Source: Haliotis cracherodii
Lineage: Eukaryota
Assembly: GCF_022045235.1 (NCBI RefSeq)
Contig: NW_027266319.1
Location: 15,686,001-15,750,000 of the forward strand
Length of the DNA stretch: 64,000 nucleotides
Direction of reading: 5' to 3'
Below the pieces are notes generated by a model, which saw nothing but the letters and a program-made list of their open reading frames with translations, had not been told where the DNA came from and searched no databases. Both the position numbers and the translations under genes were made by a program. Shown piece by piece: positions 1 to 43,960 of the stretch. Positions within the stretch are counted from its first letter, which is position 1. Each line of letters starts with the position of its first letter.

Positions 1-1039
1 AACTGCCAACAGATTTAAGCATTTTATAAAAACTTTCAACATAATTGTATTGCTCAGAATGAAAGAACACATAGTTTTAAAAGTATGCTCATTGAAAAGC
101 TGTTACGATCGGTGATATGAGAGAAAAATTCGCAAATGAAATTGTGTTCTGTAATAGCCGCTTGTTCGATAATACTCGAACCGCTCTGCATGAAAAGAGA
201 TGGACATGACTAAATCGCTATGTTCAATGAGTGAGTTAATGTAAATTGAATTTAACGCAGCGTTTGAACAGTATCCCAGTTACATCACGGTGTTTCAGCT
301 CAATGTGGGAGGCAAGCCCGAAGTGATGCTGACAAACCTGGAAACATGATCGGGGCGTACCGGGATTCGAACCCACGATCATAAGTATCTGCACAGAATT
401 GTGTCCCCAACCACCAGAAGAGGATGAACCATTATTTCTTACCCAACAAATTGAAAAGAAAATATAAAACGAGCCATTTTGTAGGTGTTACATACCCAGA
501 TAAACCAAGGGATGTGTGCTTTATTCATACCAACACCAGCTACATAGTACAACCGAAACTAAAAGGAGTTCTGTGACTTCAACACGCACTCTTGCGCAGC
601 CGACACCTCGGATCCATGGCAAGCTGAAAGAAACAACAACTTCTGTAAATAATCAGCTGATGAGGCTTAATACATATCATTCTATCATTTAGCATTCATA
701 ATTAGTACGATCAAACACAGATGATGGGCACTTATAATGTTGCAACTTTGTTTTTATATCTTCCCTGAAAAAGGATGGTAGTTGAAAGTTTCTACACAAA
801 ACGTATTTAAAAATATCTCGTGTCATCTAATGTGGGAGGATCATGCAAAGTGACGCAGTGCACATGTATATTACTTTGGTGAAACAGACGGATCCTGGTA
901 CGTCTAAGGGCAACAATCGTGCACAGTGCCTTAGGCCCCTGGGACCACAATTATCCGCTTATGAAGAAAAAAACACGATTGTAAATAAAAAAAATTACCA
1001 TGGAGGAGTAAAGGTTTCGACTTGGGCTGACTCACTTGT

Positions 1040-2458
1040 TCATTTTGCGTTGGTCTGAGTTCCACTGTTCACTGCTTTCAAATGTTGGTCTGAGTACAAC
1101 ATTTTATTCAGCCAAGTTACAAAATCTTTTCTGAAAGCAGCAAGTTCCGCCATTATGTCGTTAATGTTCGCTATCCCTCTCTTGTCCTCGACACCATTCG
1201 CACCATTCTGTAGATGCACCAGGCCGTTCACAAGCACATCCTCAACCTTATGGACAATATTTATGACTTCAACGTTGAGACGCTCCCAAAAAACCTTCAT
1301 TATTTCAGCAATGTCGCGTTTCCCAAACCCTCCGGCTCCAGTGTTAGCAGTGACAACTACACCTCCAAACATCTGCCCAATTTGATGACCAATGTTTTCA
1401 AATTCCAATTTCAGATTGCTCCAGGAGTCTCGTCTCGTGGCATCCCCCTCATCCACAGCGTTAGTGAGGGCGATGTCAGCAGCACCCTCTACAGACAGGC
1501 CGACTTGGTGAGCAACTTCGTGTTCCAGATCTCTCCAGAACTCGCGTTTATCCTTAGCGCCTCTCTTACCAGCCGGTGCACCAATTGCAGCGTTAGTCAA
1601 AGCCGTCACTGCCGCTGTCTCTGCCGCATGCCCAACGTTGTGGGCAACATTCTCAATGTCGTGTTTCAGATGGCTCCAGAAGTCCCGTTTTTGATCGTTG
1701 ACATCACGTTTTCCAGCAAGGATCGCGGAGGCAGAATTGGCGAGATTAGCTGCGACCGCTCCTTCAACAACGTGTCCGACCTGATGTGCGACGTGTTCTA
1801 CCTCGTGTTTCAGATGGCTCCAGAAGTCTCGCTTTTGATCGTTAACATCACGTTTTCCAGCAAGGATCGCGGAGGCAGAATTGGCGAGATTAGCAACGAC
1901 CGCTCCTTCAACAACGTGTCCGACCTGATGTGCGACGTGTTCTACCTCGTGTTTCAGATGGCTCCAGAAGTCTCGCTTTTGATCGTTGACATCACGTTTT
2001 CCAGCGAGGATCGCGGAGGCAGAATTGGCGAGATTAGCAACGACCGCTCCTTCAACAACGTGTCCGACCTGATGTGCGACGTGTTCTACCTCGTGTTTCA
2101 GATGGCTCCAGAAGTCCCGTTTTTGATCGTTGACATCACGTTTTCCAGCAAGGATCGCGGAGGCAGAATTGGCGAGATTAGCAACGACCGCCCCTTCAAC
2201 AACGTGTCCGACCTGATGTGCGACGTGTTCTACCTCGTGTTTCAGATGGCTCCAGAAGTCCCGCTTTTCATCGTTGACATCACGTTTTCCGGCGAGGATC
2301 GCGGAGGCAGGATTGACGAGATTAGTAAGGTGACCATTTTGGTGTGCGACATGTTCTGTATCGTGTTTCAGGTCATTCCAAAAGACAATATCCTGTTGAG
2401 ATTGTACGGCACTGACATCGCAGACCAGTACTGTTAGAAGAGAGGCCAACACTAACAT
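1040..2458 (-). CDS. Secreted multi-copy peptide precursor (472 aa) yielding His-rich amphipathic amidated peptides; candidate antimicrobial or neuropeptide-type prepropeptide
   Basis: Single coding exon. Hydrophobic N-terminus MLVLASLLTVLVCDVSA, ATG in AAG-ATG context. Repeated 48-aa/144-bp unit: DFWSHLKHEVEHVAHQVGHVVEGAVVANLANSASAILA-G-KR-DVNDQ-KR. Acceptor ttcattcag ends at 2467. Donor GTGAGT at 1035-1030, 4 nt after the stop. Acceptor tttctttcag ends at 624. AATAAA at 525-520. Confidence 0.9.
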   Translation of the reverse strand: MLVLASLLTVLVCDVSAVQSQQDIVFWNDLKHDTEHVAHQNGHLTNLVNPASAILAGKRDVNDEKRDFWSHLKHEVEHVAHQVGHVVEGAVVANLANSASAILAGKRDVNDQKRDFWSHLKHEVEHVAHQVGHVVEGAVVANLANSASAILAGKRDVNDQKRDFWSHLKHEVEHVAHQVGHVVEGAVVANLANSASAILAGKRDVNDQKRDFWSHLKHEVEHVAHQVGHVVEGAVAANLANSASAILAGKRDVNDQKRDFWSHLKHDIENVAHNVGHAAETAAVTALTNAAIGAPAGKRGAKDKREFWRDLEHEVAHQVGLSVEGAADIALTNAVDEGDATRRDSWSNLKLEFENIGHQIGQMFGGVVVTANTGAGGFGKRDIAEIMKVFWERLNVEVINIVHKVEDVLVNGLVHLQNGANGVEDKRGIANINDIMAELAAFRKDFVTWLNKMLYSDQHLKAVNSGTQTNAK

Positions 2459-2667
2459 CTTGAATCCTGAATGAATGGAAGGAAGCCATTAGTGATCAGT
2501 GTGTGAGTGAGTGAGTGAGTGAGTGAGTGAGTCATTGAGTATTATTTTACACAGCCTTTGGCAGGGGACACATACACATTGTTTCATACAAGGAAGTCAT
2601 GTGGGAATTACGTCGCTACATAAGTGTAATAGTTTTGACTGCGACGTTAAACCCCATTTCACGCCAC

Positions 2668-3089
2668 TAGTGCTGGGACGAGTCCAAATTTACTACCCAG
2701 GTACCCACCCCCTATTACCCAACCCTACCCGGGTTCCCACTGTAGGTCTCAAGAGATACAAAATGTCCGATTGGAAATTTTGTTTTACCACAGCACTTGC
2801 AAAACGTTATTTAGATACATGTATTAAACGATCTAGTCGTGCATGCACTGAAGTTGACTTAAGTTATATCGTTTTTCAACCATATGAAAAGTCAGAAGGA
2901 ATGGGTGCATAGTCAGAAAGATATGCGAACATTAGTGACTTGTAGTGTAACTATAGTGTTCTCTAGATAATTTTTGTAATTAAACTATATATCACATGAC
3001 TAACCACGGGTCCGGGTAGTACTGTGGGTACCCGGGTTCTACTCAGTACCCACCCGACCCGGGTACCCGAGTTACCCGTCCCAGCCCTA
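2668..3089. mobile_element. hAT-like MITE in the 5' intron of the peptide gene
   Basis: Terminal inverted repeats tagtgctgggacg ... cgtcccagcccta, with an imperfect 8-bp target duplication cacgccac/cacaccac. Confidence 0.65.
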
Positions 3090-3519
3090 CACACCACCTT
3101 ACTTTACCTGAGTGAGTGATTAACAATATCATGTGTTTTTCAACAATATTCCAGCGATATCACGGCAAATCTGGACCGATCAATGCCGTCCGCGCATGGG
3201 ATGAGCTAGAGCTAATATACCATTGATAGTAAGAGCATCTTACCCCGTTGACATGGCAACCATAGCAAAAATGGCATCTAGGCGCCTAAACACTCGGCCC
3301 ATTTACTTGCCAACTACGTCTCGCATAGTCTCGCATAGTCTCGCATAGAATATCATTTGTAGAATTCACTACAATATTATATATTTACATTGATTTCTTT
3401 TGGAACAGCCCAAACGATTGAAAGCGATTATACAAACGTAGGGTATTACAACAAATAAACGTGATTTGAAAATGGCAATACGCATCAAATAAGTATGTAT
3501 ACATTTGTTTTCGTCTCTT

Positions 3520-3735
3520 TGTCGTTTAACGCCGAACTCAGCAGTATTCCAGCTATATAACGGGAGTCTGTTAATACTCGAGTCTAGATCAGACAATCCA
3601 GTGATTGATATCATGATCATCGATCCACGCAATTGGGATACGATGACGTGCATCAACCAAGTCAGCGAGTCTGACCACCCGATCCCGTTAGTCGCCTCTT
3701 AAGACAATCATAATCGGCTTTTATGGCAAGCATGC
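3520..3735 (-). mobile_element. Dispersed retroposon family C (LINE 3' end or short retroposon)
   Basis: The same ~200-260 bp sequence recurs at ~8020-8215, 13330-13510, 23980-24085, 24935-25150, 26160-26422, 48117-48372, 55120-55315, 55860-56120, 59975-60125 and 61085-61230. It ends in an (aaac)n tail. Confidence 0.75.
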
Positions 3736-3823
3736 AGTATGTATATAATCTATTAATTTACATTAGTATTTTCAAACGATTGTACGACTTTGTCCCGAAA
3801 TGAAAAAAAAAATGTTTTCTTAC

Positions 3824-3875
3824 CTTCCCGTGAAGCAAGTTTACTGTAATCGTCAAGTACTCAGATTTTATATAA
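3824..3875 (-). promoter_or_regulatory. Putative TATA box and short non-coding first exon of the peptide-precursor gene
   Basis: Minus strand reads TATATAAAA (~3874-3866), an Inr-like ACAGT about 25-30 nt downstream, then GAAG|GTAAGA donor at 3823. Confidence 0.55.
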
Positions 3876-4264
3876 GCTGGTGGTAGGAACATCTGTTGGA
3901 AGCCGATCGGTTCTCAATAACATCCTGTAGAAGGGTCCGTATCTCTTGCATAACTGACCTGAACTTCACTGTACACATGACCTTGACGTTGCCTTGATGT
4001 CAGGAGTAGCGTCGTGATCAATACAAACGTGCTGTCATGATGCCATACGTTAATAAGCGTGCCAGAAACCTATGATTGTGGGCTCAAATTTCGGTTCACG
4101 CTGATTATGTTTCTAGGTGTGTCAGCACCTACCGTGTTCGTTGATTTGGTAAACGTCTGCAACGTAGTTCACTTCGACCATACTGAATAGGACTTACGTG
4201 TGGAGGCTGTATGTGTGGAGGCTGTGCCTCACACCATGGACCCACTCATCACCTCCCAGTACGA

Positions 4265-4480
4265 GACCGCCTCCGTGGACTAGTGGTAGAGCATCCGCGA
4301 TCTCCGCCCGCGTCATACAAAAAGACGTCAAAAGATGGAACTTGTTGTTACCCTGTCTTGCGCTCGGCATCAAGGGGCTAAAACAAGAACTGGTCGGCTC
4401 GGAGTCAGTATACTGTGTCTGAGTGGGGTATTCATGTTATGAATGTCGCTATATAAGTGCAATAATCTTAGACCCGACGT
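4265..4480 (+). mobile_element. tRNA-derived SINE family D (internally deleted copy)
   Basis: Head gaccgcctccgtggactagtggtagagc and body shared with copies at 47143-47483, 41827-42034 (-) and 50826-51100. Confidence 0.65.
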
Positions 4481-4698
4481 CAGTACTACGGCCGTGCTAG
4501 TCATGCCCATGTACCCTAATGAGAGATTAATTAACCACAAAATAACTGTCATCCCCAAATCAATTCTGTATCTTAAGTTTCATTTCACATTCCAGGGAAC
4601 AAATACTTGGTTGTTCTTGTCCCTTAAGTATGTAAGTGAGTTAGAGAGTTTGGTGTAGCGTCACTTTCAATTTGAATTTAGGAATCCATATACATGTA

Positions 4699-4875
4699 CA
4701 GTAAACTACGGTTATAACGAACTCGAAGGGACCACTAACTTTAGTTTGTTATAACCGTAGTTCGTTATAAGCAGGTATACAGCATAACTATAGCAAATAG
4801 TCGGGACAAAAACAATCAGTTCGTTTTATCTGTCAGTTCGTTATAAACGTGTTCGTTATAAACGTACTTTATTGT
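4699..4875. mobile_element. Tc1/mariner(pogo)-like MITE
   Basis: TA-flanked imperfect inverted ends: cagtaaactacggttataacgaac ... gttcgttataaacgtacttttattg. Confidence 0.55.
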
Positions 4876-5262
4876 ACTTGACATTTAATTCATCATTTGG
4901 CAGTGCACAGAAAGACCATCAGGTCATATCATTTAACCGTCAAGGCTTGTCACATATATACATTCCATTGTTCAAATTGCATTAATCATGTAGATAACCG
5001 CTCTTTCGCCATAATCCCTATTAAACCTCACTTTGGTATATCCTGACTATTACGTATTGGTACATTTTGGTCCAAATTGTCTTGAATATATCAAGTTTTT
5101 CAGTTTACGTTCATGGTATACCGTAGTCATCTCCTCGTTAGCTGTTCTTGACCGTCATCATGCAGGTCTCTGTACCTGCCTAAACTCCCAAGAATTGTCT
5201 CGGGACACCCGTCCTATTTTCATCTGATCATCCTTGCATGGCATTTTGGCAGGACAAACAAT

Positions 5263-7040
5263 CCCCTACATATCTGACTATTTGAAGTAGAATCAAAACA
5301 TCCAATCTCCTACACGTCCGGCAATCTTGAAGTAGAATCAATACATCTAATCCCCTACACGTCCGGCAATCTTGAAGTAGAATTCAGACAACTTAGCACC
5401 TACACGTCCGGCAATCTTGAAGTAGAATCAAGACATCTTATCCCCTACACGCCCAACCATCTTGAAGTAGAATCAAGACATCTAATCCCCTACACGTCCG
5501 GCAATCTTGAAGTAGAATTCAGACAACTTAGCACCTACACGTCCGGCAATCTTGAAGTAGAATTCAGACAACTTAGCACCTACACGTCCGACAATCTTGA
5601 AGTAGAATTCAGACAACTTAGCACCTACACGTCCGACCATCTTGGAGTAGAATCAAGACATCTTAGCACCTACACGTCCGGCAATCTTGAAGTAGAATCA
5701 AGACATCTTAGCACCTACACGCCCAACCATCTTGAAGTAGAATCAAGACATCTAATCCCCTACACGTCCGGCAATCTTGGAGTAGAATTCAGACAACTTA
5801 GCACCTACACGTCTGGCAATCTTGAAGTAGAATTCAGACAACTTAGCACCTACACGTCCGACAATCTTGAAGTAGAATTCAGACAACTTAGCACCTACAC
5901 GTCCGACCATCTTGGAGTAGAATCAAGACATCTTAGCACCTACACGTCCGGCAATCTTGAAGTAGAATCAAGACATCTTAGCACCTACACGCCCAACCAT
6001 CTTGAAGTAGAATTCAGACATCTAATCCCCTACACGTCTGGCAATCTTGAAGTAGAATTCAGACAACTTAGCACCTACACGTCCGACAATCTTGAAGTAG
6101 AATTCAGACAACTTATCACCTACACGTTCTACAATCTTGACGTAGAATCAAGACATCTAATCTCCTACACGTCTGGCAATCTTGAAGTAGAATTCAAACA
6201 TCTTAGCACCTACACGTCCGGCAATCTTGAAGTAGAATTCAGACAACTTAGCACCTACACGTCCGGCAATCTTGAAGTAGAATCAAGACATCTAATCCCC
6301 TACACGTCTGGCAATCTTGAAGTAGAATTCAGACATCTTAGCACCTATACGTCCGACAATCTTGAAGTAGAATTCAGACAACTTAGCACCTACACGTCCG
6401 GCAATCTTGAAGTAGAATCAAGACATCTAATCCCCTACACGTCCGGCAATCTTGAAGTAGAATTCAGACATCTTAGCACCTACACGTCCGACCATCTTGG
6501 AGTAAAATCAAGACATCTTAACACCTACACGTCTGGCAATCTTGTAGTAGAATCAAGACATCTTAGCACCTACACGTCCGACCATCTTGGAGTAGAATCA
6601 AGACATCTAATCCCCTACACGTCCGACCATCTTGTAGTAGAATCAAGACATCTTAGCACCTACACGTCCGACAATCTTGAAGTAGAATCAAGACATCTTA
6701 GCACCTACACGTCCGACCATCTTGAAGTAGAATCAAGACATCTTAGCACCTACACGTCCGGCAATCTTGTAGTAGAATCAAGACATCTTAGCACCTACAC
6801 GTCCGACCATCTTGGAGTAGAATCAAGACATCTAATCCCCTACACGTCCGACCATCTTGAAATAGAATCAAGACATCTAATCCCCTTCACGTCCGGCAAT
6901 CTTGTAGTAGAATCAAGACATCTTAGCACCTACACGTCCGACCATCTTGGAGTAGAATCAAGACATCTAATCCCCTACACGTCCGACCATCTTGAAGTAG
7001 AATCAAGACATCTTATCAATACATGTGCCCAACCATTATT
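5263..7040. repeat. 45-bp minisatellite, ~39 copies
   Basis: Unit tacacgtccggcaatcttgaagtagaatcaagacatcttagcacc. Confidence 0.95.
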
Positions 7041-20551: not shown

Positions 20552-23500
20552 TTAGAATGATACATTCACTACTTCACATAAGGCACGTCTATTTGAAGTT
20601 CTCACAGCCCACATGTACTGAAACTTGCTCGAAATAGCTATGTGCCCAGTTTGTTTGTTGACAGTGGAATTGTACCAGAACGTTGGAGTTATCTCCCTTC
20701 CATCAACCCAGCGCCATGTCCCCTCGGCCTTGTAACCTCCAAGATAGAGGTTTATGTTCTGTATATCTGAAGGAGAACAGATTAGAATTAAGATATGTTG
20801 TGGACGAGAGACATATGTAATTTATGATAAAACAGTTTAGGGAATTATAGGGATCACTCATGTCATTCCGGGAGAGGTCTCCTTTCAGGTTACGGAAAGT
20901 GACGAGTGTTGACTATCAATACCTGCATGTTTACACAATAGTGTACAAAGGTAAGACGTTATGCCAGGTGCAGATGTATTGATTTCCAGTAGGGTCCGGT
21001 GTTGAGTGTCTTTTCTATTTCATTTCTTTTACATATATATAGTAGAAGTGGACTGACATATATATATCCCGGTTCCTTGGTTACTTACCTTGACAACAGC
21101 CAATCTGTTTAACAACTTCCGCTTGTTTTTCGGGTGTGTCAATGATCAAAAGCGAGCCTCCGCTGTCGTTGCAACGCCGGGCATGTTCGGACCAAGATGC
21201 TTGTAACAGGTCGTGTCGAAAACAGAACTTCCCTATCCTGTTGTACACGTAGTCTAGAGGGCACCGGTCTAGATACGATAAGATATACAATATGTTTACA
21301 GTTCAGCTCCTTACAACGATATTAAAACTAGAACAAGTAAATGGACTTTAATTTCGCTTCTGCTCGAATAGATTAACAAAGATTCTCTGATGTGGTTGTG
21401 TATAAATCAGTACAATGTTAAATGTACAACTTGTAGTAGAAGTGGACAGACATGTGTACAACTTGAAGTAGAAGTGAACTGACCTGTGTACAACTTGTAG
21501 TAGAAGTGGAAAGACATGTGTATAACTTGTAGTAGAAGTGAACTGACATGCGTACAACTTGTAGTAGAAGTGGACTGACATTTGTACAACTTGTAGTAGA
21601 AGTAGACAGACATGTGTACAACTTGTAGTAGAAGTGGACTGACATTTGTACAACTTGTAGTAGAAGTAGACAGACATGTGTACAAGTTGCAGTAGAAGTG
21701 GACTGACATGTGTACAACTTGTAGTAGAAGTGGACTGACATGTGTACAACTTGTAGTAGAACTGGACAGACGTGTGTACAACTTGTAGTAGAACTGGACA
21801 GACATGTGTACAACTTGTAGTAGATTTGGACAGACATGTGTACAACTTGCAGTAGAAATGGACTGACATGTGTACAACTTGAAGCAGAAGTGGACTTACA
21901 TGTGTACAACTTGTAGTAGAAGTGGACTGACGTGTGTACAACTTGCAGTAGAAGTGGACTGACATGTGTACAACTTGTAGTAGAAGTGGACTGACGTGTG
22001 TACAACTTGAAGAAGAAATGGACTGACATGTGTACAACTTGCAGTAGAAGTGGACAGACATGTGTACAACTTGAAGTAGAAATGGACTGACATGTGTACA
22101 ACTTGAAGCAGAAGTGAACTTACATGTGTACAACTTGTAGTAGAAGTGGACTGACGTGTGTACAACTTGAAGAAGAAATGGACTGACATGTGTACAACTT
22201 GTAGTAGAAGTGAACTGACATGTGTACAACTTGTAGTAGAAGTGAACTGACATGTGTACAACTTGTAGTAGAAGTGGACTGACATGTGTACAACTTGTAG
22301 TAGAAGTGGACTGACATTTGTACAACTTGTAGTAGAAGTAGACAGACATGTGTACAAGTTGCAGTAGAAGTGGACTGACATGTGTACAACTTGTAGTAGA
22401 AGTGGACTGACATGTGTACAACTTGTAGTAGAACTGGACAGACGTGTGTACAACTTGTAGTAGAACTGGACAGACATGTGTACAACTTGTAGTAGATTTG
22501 GACAGACATGTGTACAACTTGTAGTAGAAATGGACTGACATGTGTACAACTTGAAGCAGAAGTGGACTTACATGTGTACAACTTGTAGTAGAAGTGGACT
22601 GACGTGTGTACAACTTGCAGTAGAAGTGGACTGACATGTGTACAACTTGTAGTAGAAGTGGACTGACATGTGTACAACTTGTAGTAGAAGTGGACTGACG
22701 TGTGTACAACTTGAAGTAGAAGTGGACTGACATGTGTACAACTTGTAGTAGAAGTGGACTGACGTGTGTACAACTTGAAGAAGAAATGGACTGACATGTG
22801 TACAACTTGCAGTAGAAGTGGACAGACATGTGTACAACTTGAAGTAGAAATGGACTGACATGTGTACAACTTGAAGCAGAAGTGAACTTACATGTGTACA
22901 ACTTGTAGTAGAAGTGGACTGACGTGTGTACAACTTGCAGTAGAAATGGACTGACATGTGTACAATTTGTAGTAGAAGTGAACAGACATGTGTACAACTT
23001 GCAGTAGAAATGGACAGACATGTGTACAAGTTGCAGTAGAAATGGACTGACATGTGTACAATTTGTAGTAGAAGTAGACAGACATGTGTACAACTTGTAG
23101 TAGAAGTGGACTGTTATGTGTACAACTTGTAGTAGAACTGACTGACATGTGTACAACTTGTAGTAGAATTGGACTGACATGTGTACAACTTGTAGTGGAA
23201 GTGGACTGACATGTGTACAACTTGTAGTAGAACTGGACTGACATGTGTACAACTTGTAGTAGAAGTGGACTGACATGTGTACAACTTGTAGTGGAAGTGG
23301 ACTGACATGTGTACAACTTGTAGTGGAAGTGGACTGACATGTGTACAATTTGTAGTGGAAGTGGACAGACATGTGTATAACTTGTAGTGGAAGTGGACTG
23401 ACATGTGTACAACTTGTAGTGGAAGTGGACTGACATGTGTACAATTTGTAGTGGAAGTGGACAGACATATGTACAACTTGTAGTAGAAGTGGACTGACAT

Positions 23501-24553
23501 GTGTACAACTTGCAGTAGAAGTGGACTGACATGTGTACAACTTGTAGTGGAAGTGGACTGACATGTGTACAACTTGTAGTAGAAGTGGACTGACATGTGT
23601 ACAAGTTGTAGTGGAAGTGGACAGACATGTGTACAACTTGTAGTAGAAGTGGACTGACATGTGTACAACGTGTAGTAGAAGTGGACTGACATGTGTACAA
23701 CTTGTAGTGGAAGTGGACAGACATGTGTATAACTTGTAGTGGAAGTGGACTGACATGTGTACAACTTGTAGTAGAAGTGGACTGACATGTGTACAACTTG
23801 CAGTAGAAGTGGACTGACATGTGTACAACGTGTAGTAGAAGTGGACTGACGTGTGTACAACTTGTAGTAGAAGTGGACAGACATGTGTACAACTTGCAGT
23901 AGAAGTGGACTGACGTGTGTACCATATTGGAACTGATCTGTGTACAGGTAAAACGTTTTCGTTAGTTTAACGAGTATTATTCTAGCTATGTGACGGCGGT
24001 CTGTAACTAATCGAGCCTGGATCAGTTATCCAGAATCCAGTGATTGACACCAGGAGCATCGATCTAAGCAATTGGGACGATGACATACTTGTAGTAGAAG
24101 TGCTCTGACCTGTGCACAACGTATAGCACAACTTGAACTGACCGTTGGTCAACGTGTAGCTGAAGTGGACTTAACCTGTCTTCACCTTGGAGGACATGTC
24201 CAGGTATTTCAAAGCTTGAAGTAAATTCTCAACTTACCCGTAAACAGCTTGAAGTAGCGCCATCCCTGTTGTGATACCCCTCTCTTCATGTTGTAGAAGT
24301 GTACAGAGTGGAGGAGACATCTGCCGGTGAGGATGTTGTAGGAGAAGGAGACACAGCGGACGTCCCTGTGACACAAAGAGGCACAGTCCCCCCTGTGGGA
24401 GAGTCCAGCATGATCTGTGATCTCATAGCGTTCATCAAGCATATTGTCATACTCAGGGACACGTACCATGGAACTTGATCTACCCTGAGCATTCGATGGG
24501 ACTCCAAATGATAAAATTGTTAAAAGTAGAGCGACGTTGGTGATGACGGGCAT
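20552..24553 (-). CDS. Secreted PAN/apple + C-type lectin-like domain protein, paralog 2 (exons 24553-24238, 21268-21089, 20766-20552)
   Basis: Same exon phases as paralog 1. Signal peptide MPVITNVALLLTILSFGVPSNAQG. The last exon, absent from the ORF track, reads DIQNINLYLGGYKAEGTWRWVDGREITPTFWYNSTVNKQTGHIAISSKFQYMWAVRTSNRRALCEVVNVSF*. Confidence 0.88.
21422..23945. repeat. 32-bp intronic satellite, ~78 copies
   Basis: Unit gtgtacaacttgtagtagaagtggactgacat. Stray units at ~21040-21060 and 24087-24175. Confidence 0.97.
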
Positions 24554-36964: not shown

Positions 36965-37302
36965 TTCTATCATAACTGTATGTTTTGATATATGAACTGT
37001 ACTATAATGTATTGGTAGCACCCAGGCATCTTCAAGTTTGTTATTTCTTTGTTTTTATTTAATAACTTGTTGAACATCATGCTTGTACATGCGTATCATT
37101 ACGCGCCGTGTCCGAGGCTAACATTTTGGAGAAAGAAGTTCGAACGGTTCAAATGGAAAATGGTTTCTCGTCACTGATGATACACCTTGACTCGTGACAA
37201 AATGCGGCGTGACGTTAAATTATAATTCAATTACTCAAATAAAATGTCGGCAAATCCATTTTAGACAAAGGTGGACATGACTTGGTTTGCACCCATGGGA
37301 TT

Positions 37303-40300
37303 AGAATATACACTTGTACAAGAGAACGTACAGCTCCACCCTAGTGCATGAGAATATACACTTCCACACATGTACAAGAGAACATATAGTTCCACCATTG
37401 TACAGGAGAACATATAGTTCCACCATTGTACAGGAGAACATATAGTTCCACCATTGTACAGGAGAACATATAGTTCCACCATTGTACAGGAGAACATATA
37501 GTTCCACCATTGTACAGGAGAACATATAGTTCCACCAATGTACATGAGAACATATAGTTCCACCATTGTATATGAGAACATATAGTTCCACCATTGTACA
37601 TGAGAACATATAGTTCCACCATTGTACATGAGAACATATAGTTCCACCAATGTCCATGAGAACACACACGTCCACCAATGTACATGAGAACATATAGTTC
37701 CACCATTGTACATGAGAACATATAGTTCCACCAATGTACAAGAGAACATATAGTTCCACCATTGTACATGAGAACATATAGTTCCACCATTGTACAAGAG
37801 AACATATAGTTCCACCATTGTACAGGAGAACATATAGTTCCACCATTGTACATGAGAACATATAGTTCCACCAATGTACATGAGAACATATAGTTCCACC
37901 ATTGTACATGAGAACATATAGTTCCACCATTGTACAGGAGAACATACAGTTCCACCATTGTACAGGAGAACATATAGTTCCACCATTGTACATGAGAACA
38001 TACAGTTCCACAATTATATATGAGAACATATAGTTCCACCATTGTACATGAGAACATATAGTTCCACCATTGTACATGAGAACATATAGTTCCACCAATG
38101 TACATGAGAACACACACGTCCACCAATGTACATGAGAACATATAGTTCCACCATTGTACATGAGAACATACAGTTCCACCATTGTACATGAGAACACACA
38201 CGTCCACCATTGTACATGAGAACATATAGTTCCACCATTGTACAGGAGAACATACACGTCCACCAATGTACATGAGAACATATAGATCCACCATTGTACA
38301 AAAGAACATATAGTTCCACCATTGTACATGAGAACATATAGTTCCACCATTGTACAAGAGAACATATAGTTCCACCATTGTACATGAGAACATATAGTTC
38401 CACCAATGAACATGAGAACATATAGTTCCACCATTGTACAGGAGAACATATAGTTCCACCATTGTACATGAGAACATATAGTTCCACCATTGTACATGAG
38501 AACATATAGTTCCACCATTGTACAAGAGAACATATAGTTACACCAATGTACAGGAGAACATATAGTTTCACCATTGTACAGGAGAACATATAGTTCCACC
38601 ATTGTACATGAGAACATATAGTTCCACCATTGTACAGGAGAATACATAGCTCCACCCTTGTACATGAGAACATATAGTTCCACCATTGTACAGCAGAACA
38701 TATAGTTCCACCATTGTACAGCAGAACATATAGTTCCACCATTGTACAGGAGAACATATAGTTCCACCATTGTACAGGAGAACATATAGTTCCACCATTG
38801 TACAGGAGAACATATAGTTCCACCATTGTACAGGAGAACATATAGTTCCACCAGTGTACAGGAGAACATATAGTTCCACCATTGTACAGGAGAACATATA
38901 GTTCCACCAATGTACATGAGAACATATAGTTCCACCATTGTATATGAGAACATATAGTTCCACCATTGTACATGAGAACATATAGTTCCACCATTGTACA
39001 TGAGAACATATAGTTCCACCATTGTACAGGAGAACATATAGTTCCACCATTGTACATGAGAACATATAGTTCCACCATTGTACATGAGAACATATAGTTC
39101 CACCAATGTACATGAGAACATATAGTTCCACCATTGTACATGAGAACATATAGTTCCACCATTGTACAAGAGAACATATAGTTCCACCATTGTACAGGAG
39201 AACATATAGTTCCACCATTGTACATGAGAACATATAGTTCCACCAATGTACATGAGAACATATAGTTCCACCATTGTACATGAGAACATATAGTTCCACC
39301 ATTGTACAGGAGAACATACAGTTCCACCATTGTACAGGAGAACATATAGTTCCACCATTGTACATGAGAACATACAGTTCCACCATTATATATGAGAACA
39401 TATAGTTCCACCATTGTACATGAGAACATATAGTTCCACCATTGTACATGAGAACATATAGTTCCACCATTGTACATGAGAACACACACGTCCACCAATG
39501 TACATGAGAACATATAGTTCCACCATTGTACATGAGAACATACAGTTCCACCATTGTACATGAGAACACACACGTCCACCATTGTACATGAGAACATATA
39601 GTTCCACCATTGTACATGAGAACATACACGTCCACCAATGTACATGAGAACATATAGATCCACCATTGTACAAAAGAACATATAGTTCCACCATTGTACA
39701 TGAGAACATATAGTTCCACCATTGTACAAGAGAACATATAGTTCCACCATTGTACATGAGAACATATAGTTCCACCAATGAACATGAGAACATATAGTTC
39801 CACCATTGTACAGGAGAACATATAGTTCCACCATTGTACATGAGAACATATAGTTCCACCATTGTACATGAGAACATATAGTTCCACCATTGTACAAGAG
39901 AACATATAGTTACACCAATGTACAGGAGAACATATAGTTTCACCATTGTACAGGAGAACATATAGTTCCACCATTGTACATGAGAACATATAGTTCCACC
40001 ATTGTACAGGAAAATACATAGCTCCACCCTTGTACATGAGAACATATAGTTCCACCATTGTACAGCAGAACATATAGTTCCACCATTGTACAGCAGAACA
40101 TATAGTTCCACCATTGTACAGGAGAACATATAGCTCCACCATTGTACAGGAGAACATATAGTTCCACCATTGTACATGAGAACATATAGTTCCACCATTG
40201 TACAGGAGAATACATAGCTCCACCCTTGTACATGAGAACATATAGTTCCACCATTGTACAAGAGAACATATAGTTCCACCTTTATACATGAGAACATATA

Positions 40301-41249
40301 GTTCCACCAATGTACAGGAGAACATATAGTTCCACCATTGTACAGGAGAACATATAGTTCCACCATTGTACATGAGAACATATAGTTCCACCATTGTACA
40401 TGAGAATACATATCTCCACCCTTGTACATGAGAACATATAGTTCCACCTTTATACATGAGAACATATAGTTCCACCATTGTACAAGAGAACATATAGTTC
40501 CACCATTGTACAGCAGAACATATAGTTCCACCATTGTACATGAGAACATATAGTTCCACCATTGTACAGGAGAACATATAGTTCCACCATTGTACAGCAG
40601 AACATATAGTTCCACCATTGTACAAGAGAACACACACGTCCACCATTGTACATGAAAACATATAGTTCCACCATTGTACAGGAGAACATATAGTTCCACC
40701 ATTGTACATGAGAACATATAGTTCCACCATTGTACATGAGAACATATAGTTCCACCATTATAAATGAGAACATATAGTTCCACCATTGTACAGGAGAACA
40801 TATAGTTCCACCATTGTACAGGAGAACATATAGTTCCACCATTGTACATGAGAACATATAGTTCCACCATTGTACAAGAGAACATATAGTTCCACCATTG
40901 TACATGAGAACATATAGTTCCACCAATGTACATGAGAACATATAGTTCCACCATTGTACATGAGAACATATAGTTCCACCATTGTACAGGAGAACATATA
41001 GTTCCACCATTGTACATGAGAATACATATATCCACCCTTGTACATGAGAACATATAGTTCCACCTTTATACATGAGAACATATAGTTCCACCATTGTACA
41101 AGAGAACATATAGTTCCACCATTGTACAGCAGAACATATAGTTCCACCATTGTACAGGAGAACATATAGTTCCACCATTGTACAGGAGAACATATAGTTC
41201 CACCATTGTACAGGAGAATACATAGCTCCACCCTTGTACATGAGAACAT
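37303..41249. repeat. 28-bp satellite, subtype 1 (~140 copies)
   Basis: Unit gagaacatatagttccaccattgtacat. Confidence 0.97.
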
Positions 41250-41936: not shown

Positions 41937-43905
41937 CATCTTTTAACGTATTTTGGTATGACGCAGCCGGGAATCGAACCCCGGACCTTCCGCTCTCCGG
42001 GCGGAGGCTCTACCACGAGACCACGGAGGCGGTCTGCGGTAAATGAGAACATTCAGGGCCTTGCATGTAAATAAGAACACATAGGTCCTCGCTTGTACAT
42101 GAGAACATAGAGGACCTGGCATGTAACTGAGAACACATAGGTCCTCGCTGGTACATGCGAATATAGAGGACCTGGCATGTAACTGAGAACACATAGGTCC
42201 TCGCTTGTACATGAGAATATAGAGGACCTGGCATGTAACTGAGAACACATAGGTCCTCGCTGGTACATGAGAATATAGAGGACCTGGCATGTAACTGAGA
42301 ACACATAGGTCCTCGCTGGTACATGAGAATATAGAGGACCTGGCATGTAACCGAGAACACATAGGTCCTCGCTGGTACATGCGAATATAGAGGACCTGGC
42401 ATGTAACTGAGAACACATAGGTCCTCGCTGTTACATGAGAACATAGAGGTCCTCGCTTGTGCATAAGAACACATAGGTCCTCGCTTGTACATGAGAACAT
42501 AGAGGTCCTCGCATGTAAATGAGAACACATAGGTCCTCGCTGGTACATGAGAATATAGAGGACCTGGCATGTAACTGAGAACACATAGGTCCTCGCTGGT
42601 ACATGAGAATATAGAGGACCTGGCATGTAACTGAGAACACATAGGTCCTCGCTGGTACATGCGAATATAGAGGACCTGGCATGTAACTGAGAACACATAG
42701 GTCCTCGCTTGTACATGAGAATATAGAGGACCTGGCATGTAACTGAGAACACATAGGTCCTCGCTGGTACATGAGAATATAGAGGACCTGGCATGTAACT
42801 GAGAACACATAGGTCCTCGCTGGTACATGCGAATATAGAGGACCTGGCATGTAACTGAGAACACATAGGTCCTCGCTGGTACATGAGAATATAGAGGACC
42901 TGGCATGTAACTGAGAACACATAGGTCCTCGCTGTTACATGAGAACATAGAGGTCCTCGCTTGTGCATAAGAACACATAGGTCCTCGCTTGTACATGTGA
43001 ACACATAGGTCCTCGCTGGTACATGAGAAGACATAGGTCCTCGCTTGTATATGAGAACATAGGGGTCCTTGCTTGTGCATAAGGACACATAGATCTTCGG
43101 TTGTAAATGAGAACAAATATGTCCTCGCTGGTACATGAGAACACAGAGGTCCTTGCATGTAAATGAGAACACATAGGTCCTCGATGGAACACGAGAACAT
43201 AGAGGTCCTCGCTCTGTGCATAAGAACACATAGATCTTCGGTTGTAAATGAGAACACATAGGTCCTCGCTGGAAAACGAGAACATAGGGGTCCTCGCTCT
43301 GTGCATAAGAACACATAGGTCTGCGGTTGTAAATGAGAACACATAGGTCCTCGCTGGTACATGAGAACATAGAGATCCTCGCTGGTACATAAGAACACAT
43401 AGGTCCTCGCTGGTACATGCGAACACATAGGTCCTCGCTTGTATATGAGAACATATAGGTCCTTGCTGGAACACGAGAACATAGAGGTCCTTGCATGTAA
43501 ATGAGAACACATAGGTCCTCGCTGGTACATGCGAACACATAGGTCCTCGTTTGTATATGAGAACATATAGGTCCTTGCTGGAACACGAGAACATAGAGGT
43601 CCTTGCATGTAAATGAAAACACATAGGTCCTCGCTGGAACACGAGAACATAGAGGTCCTAGCTTGTGCATAAGAACACATAGGTCTTCGGTTGTAAATGA
43701 GAACACATATGTCCTCGCTGGAACACGAGAACAAAGAGGTCCTCGCTTGTGCATAAGAACACATAGGTCCTCGCTTGTAAATGAGAAGACATATGTCCTC
43801 GCTGGTACATGAGAACATAGAGGTCCTCGCTGGTACATGAGAACGTAGAGGTCCTCGCTGGAACGTGAGAACACATAGGTCCGTCAACATTTGTACATCA
43901 GAACA
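41250..43905. repeat. 28-bp satellite, subtype 2, partly organised as 56-bp dimers; interrupted by a family D SINE with (GT)n at 41827-42034
   Basis: Units gagaacacataggtcctcgctggtacat and gagaatatagaggacctggcatgtaact. Confidence 0.95.
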
Positions 43906-43960
43906 TATACACACAGACCACCCATTTTCCCTTAGAACATGCGATGGAATGTGACAAGTG

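Follow-up and report, generated by a model that had tools for sequence, protein, structure and literature searches.

A Putative Polyprotein Precursor of Amidated, Histidine-Bearing Amphipathic Peptides in the Abalone Haliotis cracherodii

Gene and Precursor Organization

The window analysed here is a 64,000-nucleotide stretch of the Haliotis cracherodii genome (RefSeq assembly GCF_022045235.1, contig NW_027266319.1, positions 15,686,001–15,750,000 of the forward strand). Its minus strand carries an ATG-to-TGA open reading frame (ORF) of 472 codons (window 1040–2458), encoding a putative precursor of multiple secreted, amidated peptides. Splitting of the translation at dibasic sites yields a signal-like start, nine units bounded by KR or RR and a 45-aa tail with a single RK site. 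Three units (residues 67–107, 115–155 and 163–203) are identical and a fourth (residues 211–251) is a V26A variant; each of these four major units consists of a 38-mer with G-KR, followed by an acidic spacer, DVNDQ-KR. A preliminary description of the locus, made from the letters of the DNA, had proposed a signal peptide with about nine KR/RR-bounded peptides, three identical 38-mers with one V-to-A variant, and a G-KR and acidic-spacer layout. The ORF splitting bears out all three points, and the ortholog and paralogs described below share this layout.

The gene comprises the following features (unit boundaries follow from the dibasic splitting):

1036–2466, minus strand: main exon with the entire coding sequence; 3′ end taken from RNA contigs, 5′ end at the predicted splice acceptor ttcag/gattcaagATG
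1040–2458, minus strand: coding sequence, 472 codons with TGA at 1040–1042; the C-terminus agrees with the end of the Haliotis asinina RefSeq protein
2408–2458, minus strand: predicted signal peptide, residues 1–17, hydrophobic core L2–V12; cleavage after V-S-A assigned by eye, LLT[VI] core present in all five family proteins
2282–2407, minus strand: unit 0, residues 18–59, a shortened and N-terminally extended copy with a G-KR end
2138–2260, minus strand: major unit 1, 38-mer (2147–2260) with G-KR
1994–2116, minus strand: major unit 2, protein identical to unit 1
1850–1972, minus strand: major unit 3, protein identical to unit 1
1706–1828, minus strand: major unit 4, V26A
1562–1684, minus strand: unit 5, residues 259–299, variant 38-mer with G-KR, nearest to the type of the C17 paralog (dS 0.97, dN/dS 0.09 against the C17 unit)
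1430–1543, minus strand: unit 6, residues 306–343, degenerate, RR end without Gly and thus without an amidation signal
1316–1429, minus strand: unit 7, residues 344–381, divergent, with a G-KR end here and F-E-KR in H. asinina (by splitting and alignment)
1043–1315, minus strand: C-terminal region, residues 382–472, a 46-aa unit (382–427, D-KR end) and the 45-aa tail; conserved with H. asinina, two long helices predicted
1659–2325, no strand assigned: 144-bp tandem repeat, 4.6 copies, 96% matching (Tandem Repeats Finder), the DNA basis of the repeated units
624–1035, minus strand: intron of 412 nt in the 3′ untranslated region (3′UTR), donor GTGAGT 4 nt past the stop codon, acceptor tttcag (contig joint 623/1036)
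478–623, minus strand: last exon, 3′UTR only, AATAAA at 522–527 and poly(A) end near 478 (contig pieces 480–623 and a loose T-run end)

The protein has the generic features of a prohormone or neuropeptide precursor: a signal peptide, repeats between dibasic sites that are conserved in five proteins of three species, and a Gly ahead of the basic site. Every major unit in all family proteins is followed by G-KR or G-RKR, while degenerate units 6 and 8 lack the Gly. Cysteine occurs only within the signal peptide, and the precursor contains no N-glycosylation sequons. A 407-aa ORF on the plus strand (1214–2437) is the mirror image of the minus-strand coding sequence.

Transcript Structure and Abundance

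Contigs of four public sequencing runs (X1, X2, X15 and X10) were placed on window positions 1–6000; the runs were taken to be RNA because of splicing and polyadenylation. The X1, X2 and X15 contigs span 1036–2468 at about 95–96% identity and, because of this identity, are assigned to three related abalone species. The single X10 contig shows 1 mismatch in 174 bases, and X10 is probably from the window's own species.

One X15 contig (record 17) joins position 1036 straight to 623, and the 412 skipped bases have the form CT..AC on the plus strand, which on the minus strand reads GT..AG. In X1 and X2, contig ends left loose at 1036 match the start of the exon beginning at 623, and a T-run before position 477 in X2 represents a minus-strand poly(A) tail downstream of the AATAAA signal. 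The gene is real and not a chance ORF, as it produces a spliced, polyadenylated minus-strand transcript. The paralog found in the same genome (C17 paralog, see below) has the donor GTAAGT likewise 4 nt past its stop codon, and both genes share an acceptor of the form cag/G..TTCAA..ATG, 7–8 nt ahead of the ATG. Since an acceptor precedes the start codon and a donor follows the stop codon, the whole coding sequence would lie in one exon between a 5′UTR intron and a 3′UTR intron.

Contig depth was used as a crude measure of abundance. Over the unique 3′ part of the coding sequence it reached 4,228–4,688 in X1, 4,654 in X2 and 326 in X15, and stayed below 10 in X10; within the 3′UTR intron it was only 38–64. 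Depth thus spans roughly three orders of magnitude, which suggests that expression depends strongly on tissue or condition.

Family and Distribution

Relatives were sought by a word search of 5.8 billion proteins and a HMMER search of 1.8 billion representatives. Both returned true relatives only from Haliotis, all of them annotated as uncharacterized. They include a 346-aa ortholog in H. asinina ('uncharacterized protein') and a pair from adjacent genes in Haliotis rubra, LOC124277455 (161 aa) and LOC124277456 (132 aa), located together on one 54.8-kb contig. A six-frame search of the H. cracherodii genome itself revealed one paralog (G000:C17:2568422-2569033), with a 235-aa ORF for a signal peptide followed by four 38-mer units that are nearly identical (L002, G000:C17:2566922-2570533, ORF 1414–2121); it has neither the degenerate units nor the C-terminal helices of the window gene. 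Downstream of this ORF, at about 2290–2400 of L002, lies a tRNA-like sequence resembling a short interspersed nuclear element (SINE). Other weak matches in the same genome (L003–L009) are satellite arrays open in several frames and were not counted as family members.

Residues F2, W3, S4, L6, K7, H8, E11, A14, H15, V17, G18 and H19 are conserved or nearly so in all units, as are V21, E22, G23, A24, L29, N31 and A33, the Gly with its two basic residues and the KR that follows the spacer. His12 is replaced by Asn in almost all relatives, and His5 by Asp in H. rubra. The spacers vary within the family (DVNDQ, DVSDE, EISPA, EISAA and EISAD). In our reading of these sequences, the proteins form a new peptide family whose precursor is of a known type and which, as far as databases show, is confined to abalone.

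Several other candidates from the protein searches were rejected. The phmmer matches P0003, P0005, P0006, P0009 and P0010 are unrelated repeat proteins. P0004 (from a metagenome) and P0008 (from the lichen fungus Ptychographa xylographoides) share an FW..K.D...H motif with the abalone units, yet reach just 8–11 bits per unit against a hidden Markov model (HMM) of those units. Both are secreted repeat proteins whose repeats open with FW..[LV]K.D....[AG]H and are separated by KR or AR and acidic DLE-type spacers; their architecture is Kex2-style, and either convergence or distant homology with the abalone units may account for it. P0007 and P0011 possess a G-KR and acidic-spacer layout but have a per-unit HMM score of zero, and a search seeded with P0007 returned P0007 alone.

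Selection on the Peptide and the Spacer

The four major repeats differ from one another at six codons, and at five of these the changes are synonymous. Between the window units and the units of the C17 paralog, the peptide with its G-KR shows a dN/dS of 0.09 at a dS of about 1 to >2, which is saturated. The five spacer codons in the same comparison give a dN/dS of about 1.3, a value based on very few sites. The flanking dibasic sites are kept while the spacer residues drift. Strong purifying selection acts on the peptide and not on the spacer. Because the peptide evolves at this low ratio next to a freely varying spacer, the excised peptide is the product that selection preserves, which fits the polyprotein reading. 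The 14 differences listed for the related-species contigs lie in the peripheral and degenerate units. Nine of them alter the amino acid, and one of the nine, R342K, leaves a dibasic site intact.

Geometry and Predicted Structure

On a helical wheel of the major 38-mer, His 5, 8, 12, 15 and 19 fall inside an 80-degree arc (60–140 degrees), and F2, W3, L6, V10, V13, V17 and V20 occupy 200–300 degrees, facing away from the His arc. The hydrophobic moment of residues 1–22 is 0.46, a value matched by 0.04% of shuffled sequences. The C-terminal half has a high content of Ala, Val and Leu and also contains Gly. The major 38-mer carries a net charge of −2 when its His are neutral and of +3 when they are protonated. 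The conserved residues of the polar face form a ladder of His8, Glu11, His15, His19 and Glu22 with i+3/i+4 spacing.

Structure prediction for the isolated 38-mer, with eight aligned units, gives one helix over residues 2–37 (mean predicted local distance difference test score, pLDDT, of 76.6). AlphaFold modelling of the whole precursor with a five-protein alignment gives a pLDDT of 39.7 and a predicted template modelling score (pTM) of 0.23, i.e., no confident tertiary fold, as expected of a polyprotein. In this model each unit consists of a helix, a break at G18-H19 and a second helix; the best-predicted part is residues 380–455 (pLDDT 53–70), modelled as two long helices. The models thus support helicity and leave the hinge uncertain. 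Prediction of a four-copy complex scored 0.08 against a mark of 0.32, which is evidence neither for nor against self-association.

The preliminary description had recognized a hydrophobic face formed by the seven residues named above, an amphipathic helix and the two charge values, all of which agree with these results. It had also described a single stripe of five His residues; the geometry is right, while only His8, His15 and His19 of the stripe are conserved in the family.

Comparison with Known Peptide Families

The sequences were compared with databases at permissive thresholds. A Pfam hmmscan at E-values up to 10, run with the whole ORF and with a single 48-aa unit, matched neither the Cecropin model (PF00272) nor any dermaseptin- or magainin-type model. 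Neither the window protein nor its ortholog or paralog matched the Latarcin model (PF10279); weak summed matches to it, with no single stretch passing, occur only in the metagenomic look-alikes P0004 and P0007. Pfam matches to Secretin_N_2, GDT1 and DUF6507, obtained with the ORF, the unit, the C-terminal piece and the relatives, were rejected as summed low-complexity matches, again with no single stretch passing. A sequence search of the PDB with the 38-mer returned nothing at E-values up to 10, and the ESM Atlas gave no usable match for the whole protein or for residues 382–472. The view that the peptides belong to an unrecognized family therefore holds: there is no match in Pfam, in the PDB or among known families, and the relatives, confined to Haliotis, are all uncharacterized. 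A match to a characterized neuropeptide family, which would have contradicted the preliminary description, was looked for in Pfam, among the homologs and in the searchable literature, and was not found.

The literature gave a similar result. Peptide motifs and RefSeq identifiers of the family are absent from all searchable papers, and the motifs are absent from 12 text supplements of a paper on the ganglia transcriptome and peptidome of Haliotis discus hannai, which is a weak negative. Abalone antimicrobial peptides (AMPs) listed in a 2025 review comprise molluscidin, macins, hemocyanin-derived haliotisin and LGBP-derived peptides (PMC11767717); none of them is of the present 38-mer type. HGAP is a double-chain peptide and is not the abalone 38-mer. 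The mucus of H. asinina reportedly releases three major, abundant water-soluble peptides (PMC5403342, citing Kuanpradit et al. 2012). No homolog named as mucus-associated was found at 130–826 aa or in a search with no length limit, but short or partial records below 130 aa may have escaped detection.

Several known systems resemble the abalone peptide in part. Cecropins are linear amidated AMPs of insects and nematodes, about 37 aa long, strongly cationic and released from a single-copy precursor. They share with the abalone 38-mer a similar length, a Trp close to the N-terminus and an amidation signal, as well as an amphipathic helix that is succeeded by Gly and a half rich in Ala and Val. 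The abalone peptide, however, carries a charge of −2 or −3, has His and Glu in place of Lys and Arg and comes from a multi-copy precursor, so that the resemblance is one of layout only. The cecropin/dermaseptin comparison made in the preliminary description stands in that sense, but the peptide is anionic and matches neither family in Pfam.

Human dermcidin peptide DCD-1L, found in sweat, is likewise anionic, amphipathic and helical, with a mass of roughly 4–5 kDa. It is secreted onto the body surface, and its activity and oligomeric channel need Zn bridging acidic and His residues. Dermcidin has no sequence similarity to the abalone peptide, is encoded as a single copy and is not amidated. 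Clavanins and piscidins are also amphipathic helices with His on the polar face; their activity is raised by acid pH or by Zn/Cu, and clavanins are amidated. Unlike the abalone family, which is anionic or neutral, they are cationic, 22–25 aa long and single-copy, and no sequence relationship was detected.

The precursor form itself, with a signal peptide, tandem KR-flanked copies and short acidic spacers, recurs in myomodulin, Xenopus magainin, spider latarcin and Candida Ece1/candidalysin, but the abalone peptide is unrelated in sequence to all of them. The magainin-like precursor suggested in the preliminary description is accordingly apt for its multi-copy, acidic-spacer logic, which is common, but not as family membership, since no such Pfam model was matched. 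Within the genus, the myomodulin precursor of H. asinina has the multi-copy dibasic form with 7 copies (PMC3434067).

Proposed Processing and Function

Prohormone maturation follows an established chemistry: a convertase cut, carboxypeptidase trimming and conversion of Gly to an amide by peptidylglycine alpha-amidating monooxygenase (PAM). Applied to the abalone precursor, signal peptidase would take off the signal peptide, convertases of the furin or prohormone convertase (PC) type would cleave every KR and RR, a carboxypeptidase would remove the trailing basic residues and PAM would turn each exposed Gly into a C-terminal amide. The expected yield per precursor would be four 38-residue amides with a calculated monoisotopic mass of 4040.08 (4012.05 for one copy), together with variant peptides, three to four in number, the acidic spacers as pentapeptides and the helical C-terminal piece. 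For the amide of unit 5, the calculated mass is 3917.96. Taken on their own, this architecture and processing are, in our judgement, highly probable. That the product is instead an uncleaved secreted helical-repeat protein, with incidental KR pairs, seems very improbable: AlphaFold does place helices throughout the precursor, but basic sites flank the spacer at nearly every unit boundary in all five proteins while the spacer residues vary, nearly all of the well-conserved units have Gly ahead of the basic residues, and the model lacks confident tertiary packing at the pLDDT and pTM given above.

As to function, we tentatively prefer, at somewhat short of even chances, an exocrine or host-defence peptide of cecropin-like layout that is anionic and would act on membranes or self-associate upon neutralization of its His/Glu ladder. 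A bound divalent metal, or acid pH with partial protonation, would bring this neutralization about. Metal neutralization as in dermcidin, or partial protonation, would be a more general form of the switch put forward in the preliminary description. Lineage restriction, copy-number variation and extreme abundance in some samples are typical of secreted effector peptides and would support an effector role. We further speculate, regarding it as rather unlikely, that the peptides form a gastropod family of anionic, metal- or acid-gated defence molecules, in which the ladder would bind Zn/Cu or be protonated in an acidic gut or phagosome, turning a soluble anionic helix of cecropin-like layout into one that inserts into membranes and self-associates; such a peptide would be the molluscan equivalent of dermcidin, produced in large amounts from a polyprotein.

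Several observations weigh against a defence peptide of this kind. With neutral His, all peptides of the family carry a negative net charge (−2 or −3), unlike classical AMPs. Full protonation of His brings the charge to between 0 and +3 across the family, and the H. rubra type reaches 0 only and is never cationic. Becoming cationic at low pH, which the preliminary description had suggested as the switch, is for this reason not the common principle of the family, even if the charges of the major 38-mer allow it. Metal binding, in turn, is deduced solely from residue spacing; the G18-H19 hinge of the precursor model is absent from the continuous helix of the isolated-peptide model; and self-association received no support from the four-copy prediction, which gave no verdict. 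Finally, the dN/dS of about 0.09 and the invariant polar residues resemble a receptor ligand more than a fast-evolving AMP. Exact conservation of the polar residues at such a ratio would be no less compatible with a specific ligand, be it metal or receptor, than with a generic attack on membranes.

It is mainly because of this very low dN/dS and these invariant polar residues that two other functions have to be considered. The 38-mer amide may be a receptor-acting signal, i.e., a lineage-specific neuropeptide or hormone, or a water- or mucus-borne cue, with the multi-copy precursor amplifying the dose; we consider this possible but doubtful. The amidation signal, the multi-copy dibasic layout and the acidic spacers are the standard form of a neuropeptide precursor, S4, K7, H8, E11, H15, G18, H19 and E22 are invariant between ancient paralogs at that same ratio, and an anionic charge is no obstacle for a ligand. 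For a mollusc neuropeptide, however, a helix of 38 residues that is strongly amphipathic and ends in a hydrophobic tail would be unusual. The family is also found only in Haliotis, matches no Pfam or known neuropeptide family, contains no mucus-associated-named protein among its homologs in the length ranges searched, and has left no motif in the H. discus hannai ganglia supplements or the searchable papers.

A metal-handling or material component is, in our view, improbable. Here the ladder would coordinate Zn, Cu, Ni or Ca, serving for buffering or for cross-linking of mucus, adhesive or shell matrix, and the Ala/Val half would self-assemble. Five ladder residues lie on one helical face and are kept as exact residues rather than as polarity alone, Ala, Val and Gly abound in the C-terminal half, and the very high transcript abundance in some samples is typical of secreted structural products. 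Against such a role, amidation and precise excision of a 4-kDa peptide are foreign to known mollusc matrix and adhesive proteins, Cys, DOPA-prone Tyr and glycosylation sequons are all lacking, and the oligomer prediction offers no support, its outcome being no verdict.

Genomic Surroundings

The 5′UTR exon was not located, and a blastn comparison of the regions upstream of the two paralogs revealed a shared transposon fragment only. A 217-bp piece upstream of the gene recurs in inverted orientation ahead of the C17 paralog. The presumed 5′UTR intron contains a microsatellite, (AGTG)n in 10.8 copies (window 2498–2540), at a distance of about 40 nt from the start codon on its upstream side.

Very high summed depth was found at window 201–400, 2600–3200, 3400–3800 and 4000–5000, where all four runs contribute thousands of contigs that are 85–95% alike. 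These stretches are deep even in the run with almost no reads from the gene, and they are probably dispersed repeats or transposon fragments that flank it. Further along, window 21348–23925, 37261–41249 and 41943–43914 contain satellite-like tandem arrays in which several minus-strand frames are open, producing spurious ORFs of 600–826 aa; GC skew reaches +0.36 at 22–24 kb.

Biological Significance

Abalone are farmed, the black abalone is endangered by infectious disease, and few gene-encoded effector peptides are known from these animals (PMC11767717). The gene described here provides a concrete target: a predicted amide of 4.04 kDa, encoded in at least four copies per transcript, conserved across the genus and belonging to no described family. 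Its predicted mass and sequence make it directly testable. If the defence role is true, the peptide would represent a rare anionic, His/Glu-gated type, in which a cecropin-like layout functions in seawater although its charge is reversed. Should it instead serve as a signal or bind metal, it would still be an undescribed, strongly selected and lineage-specific secreted product of abalone.

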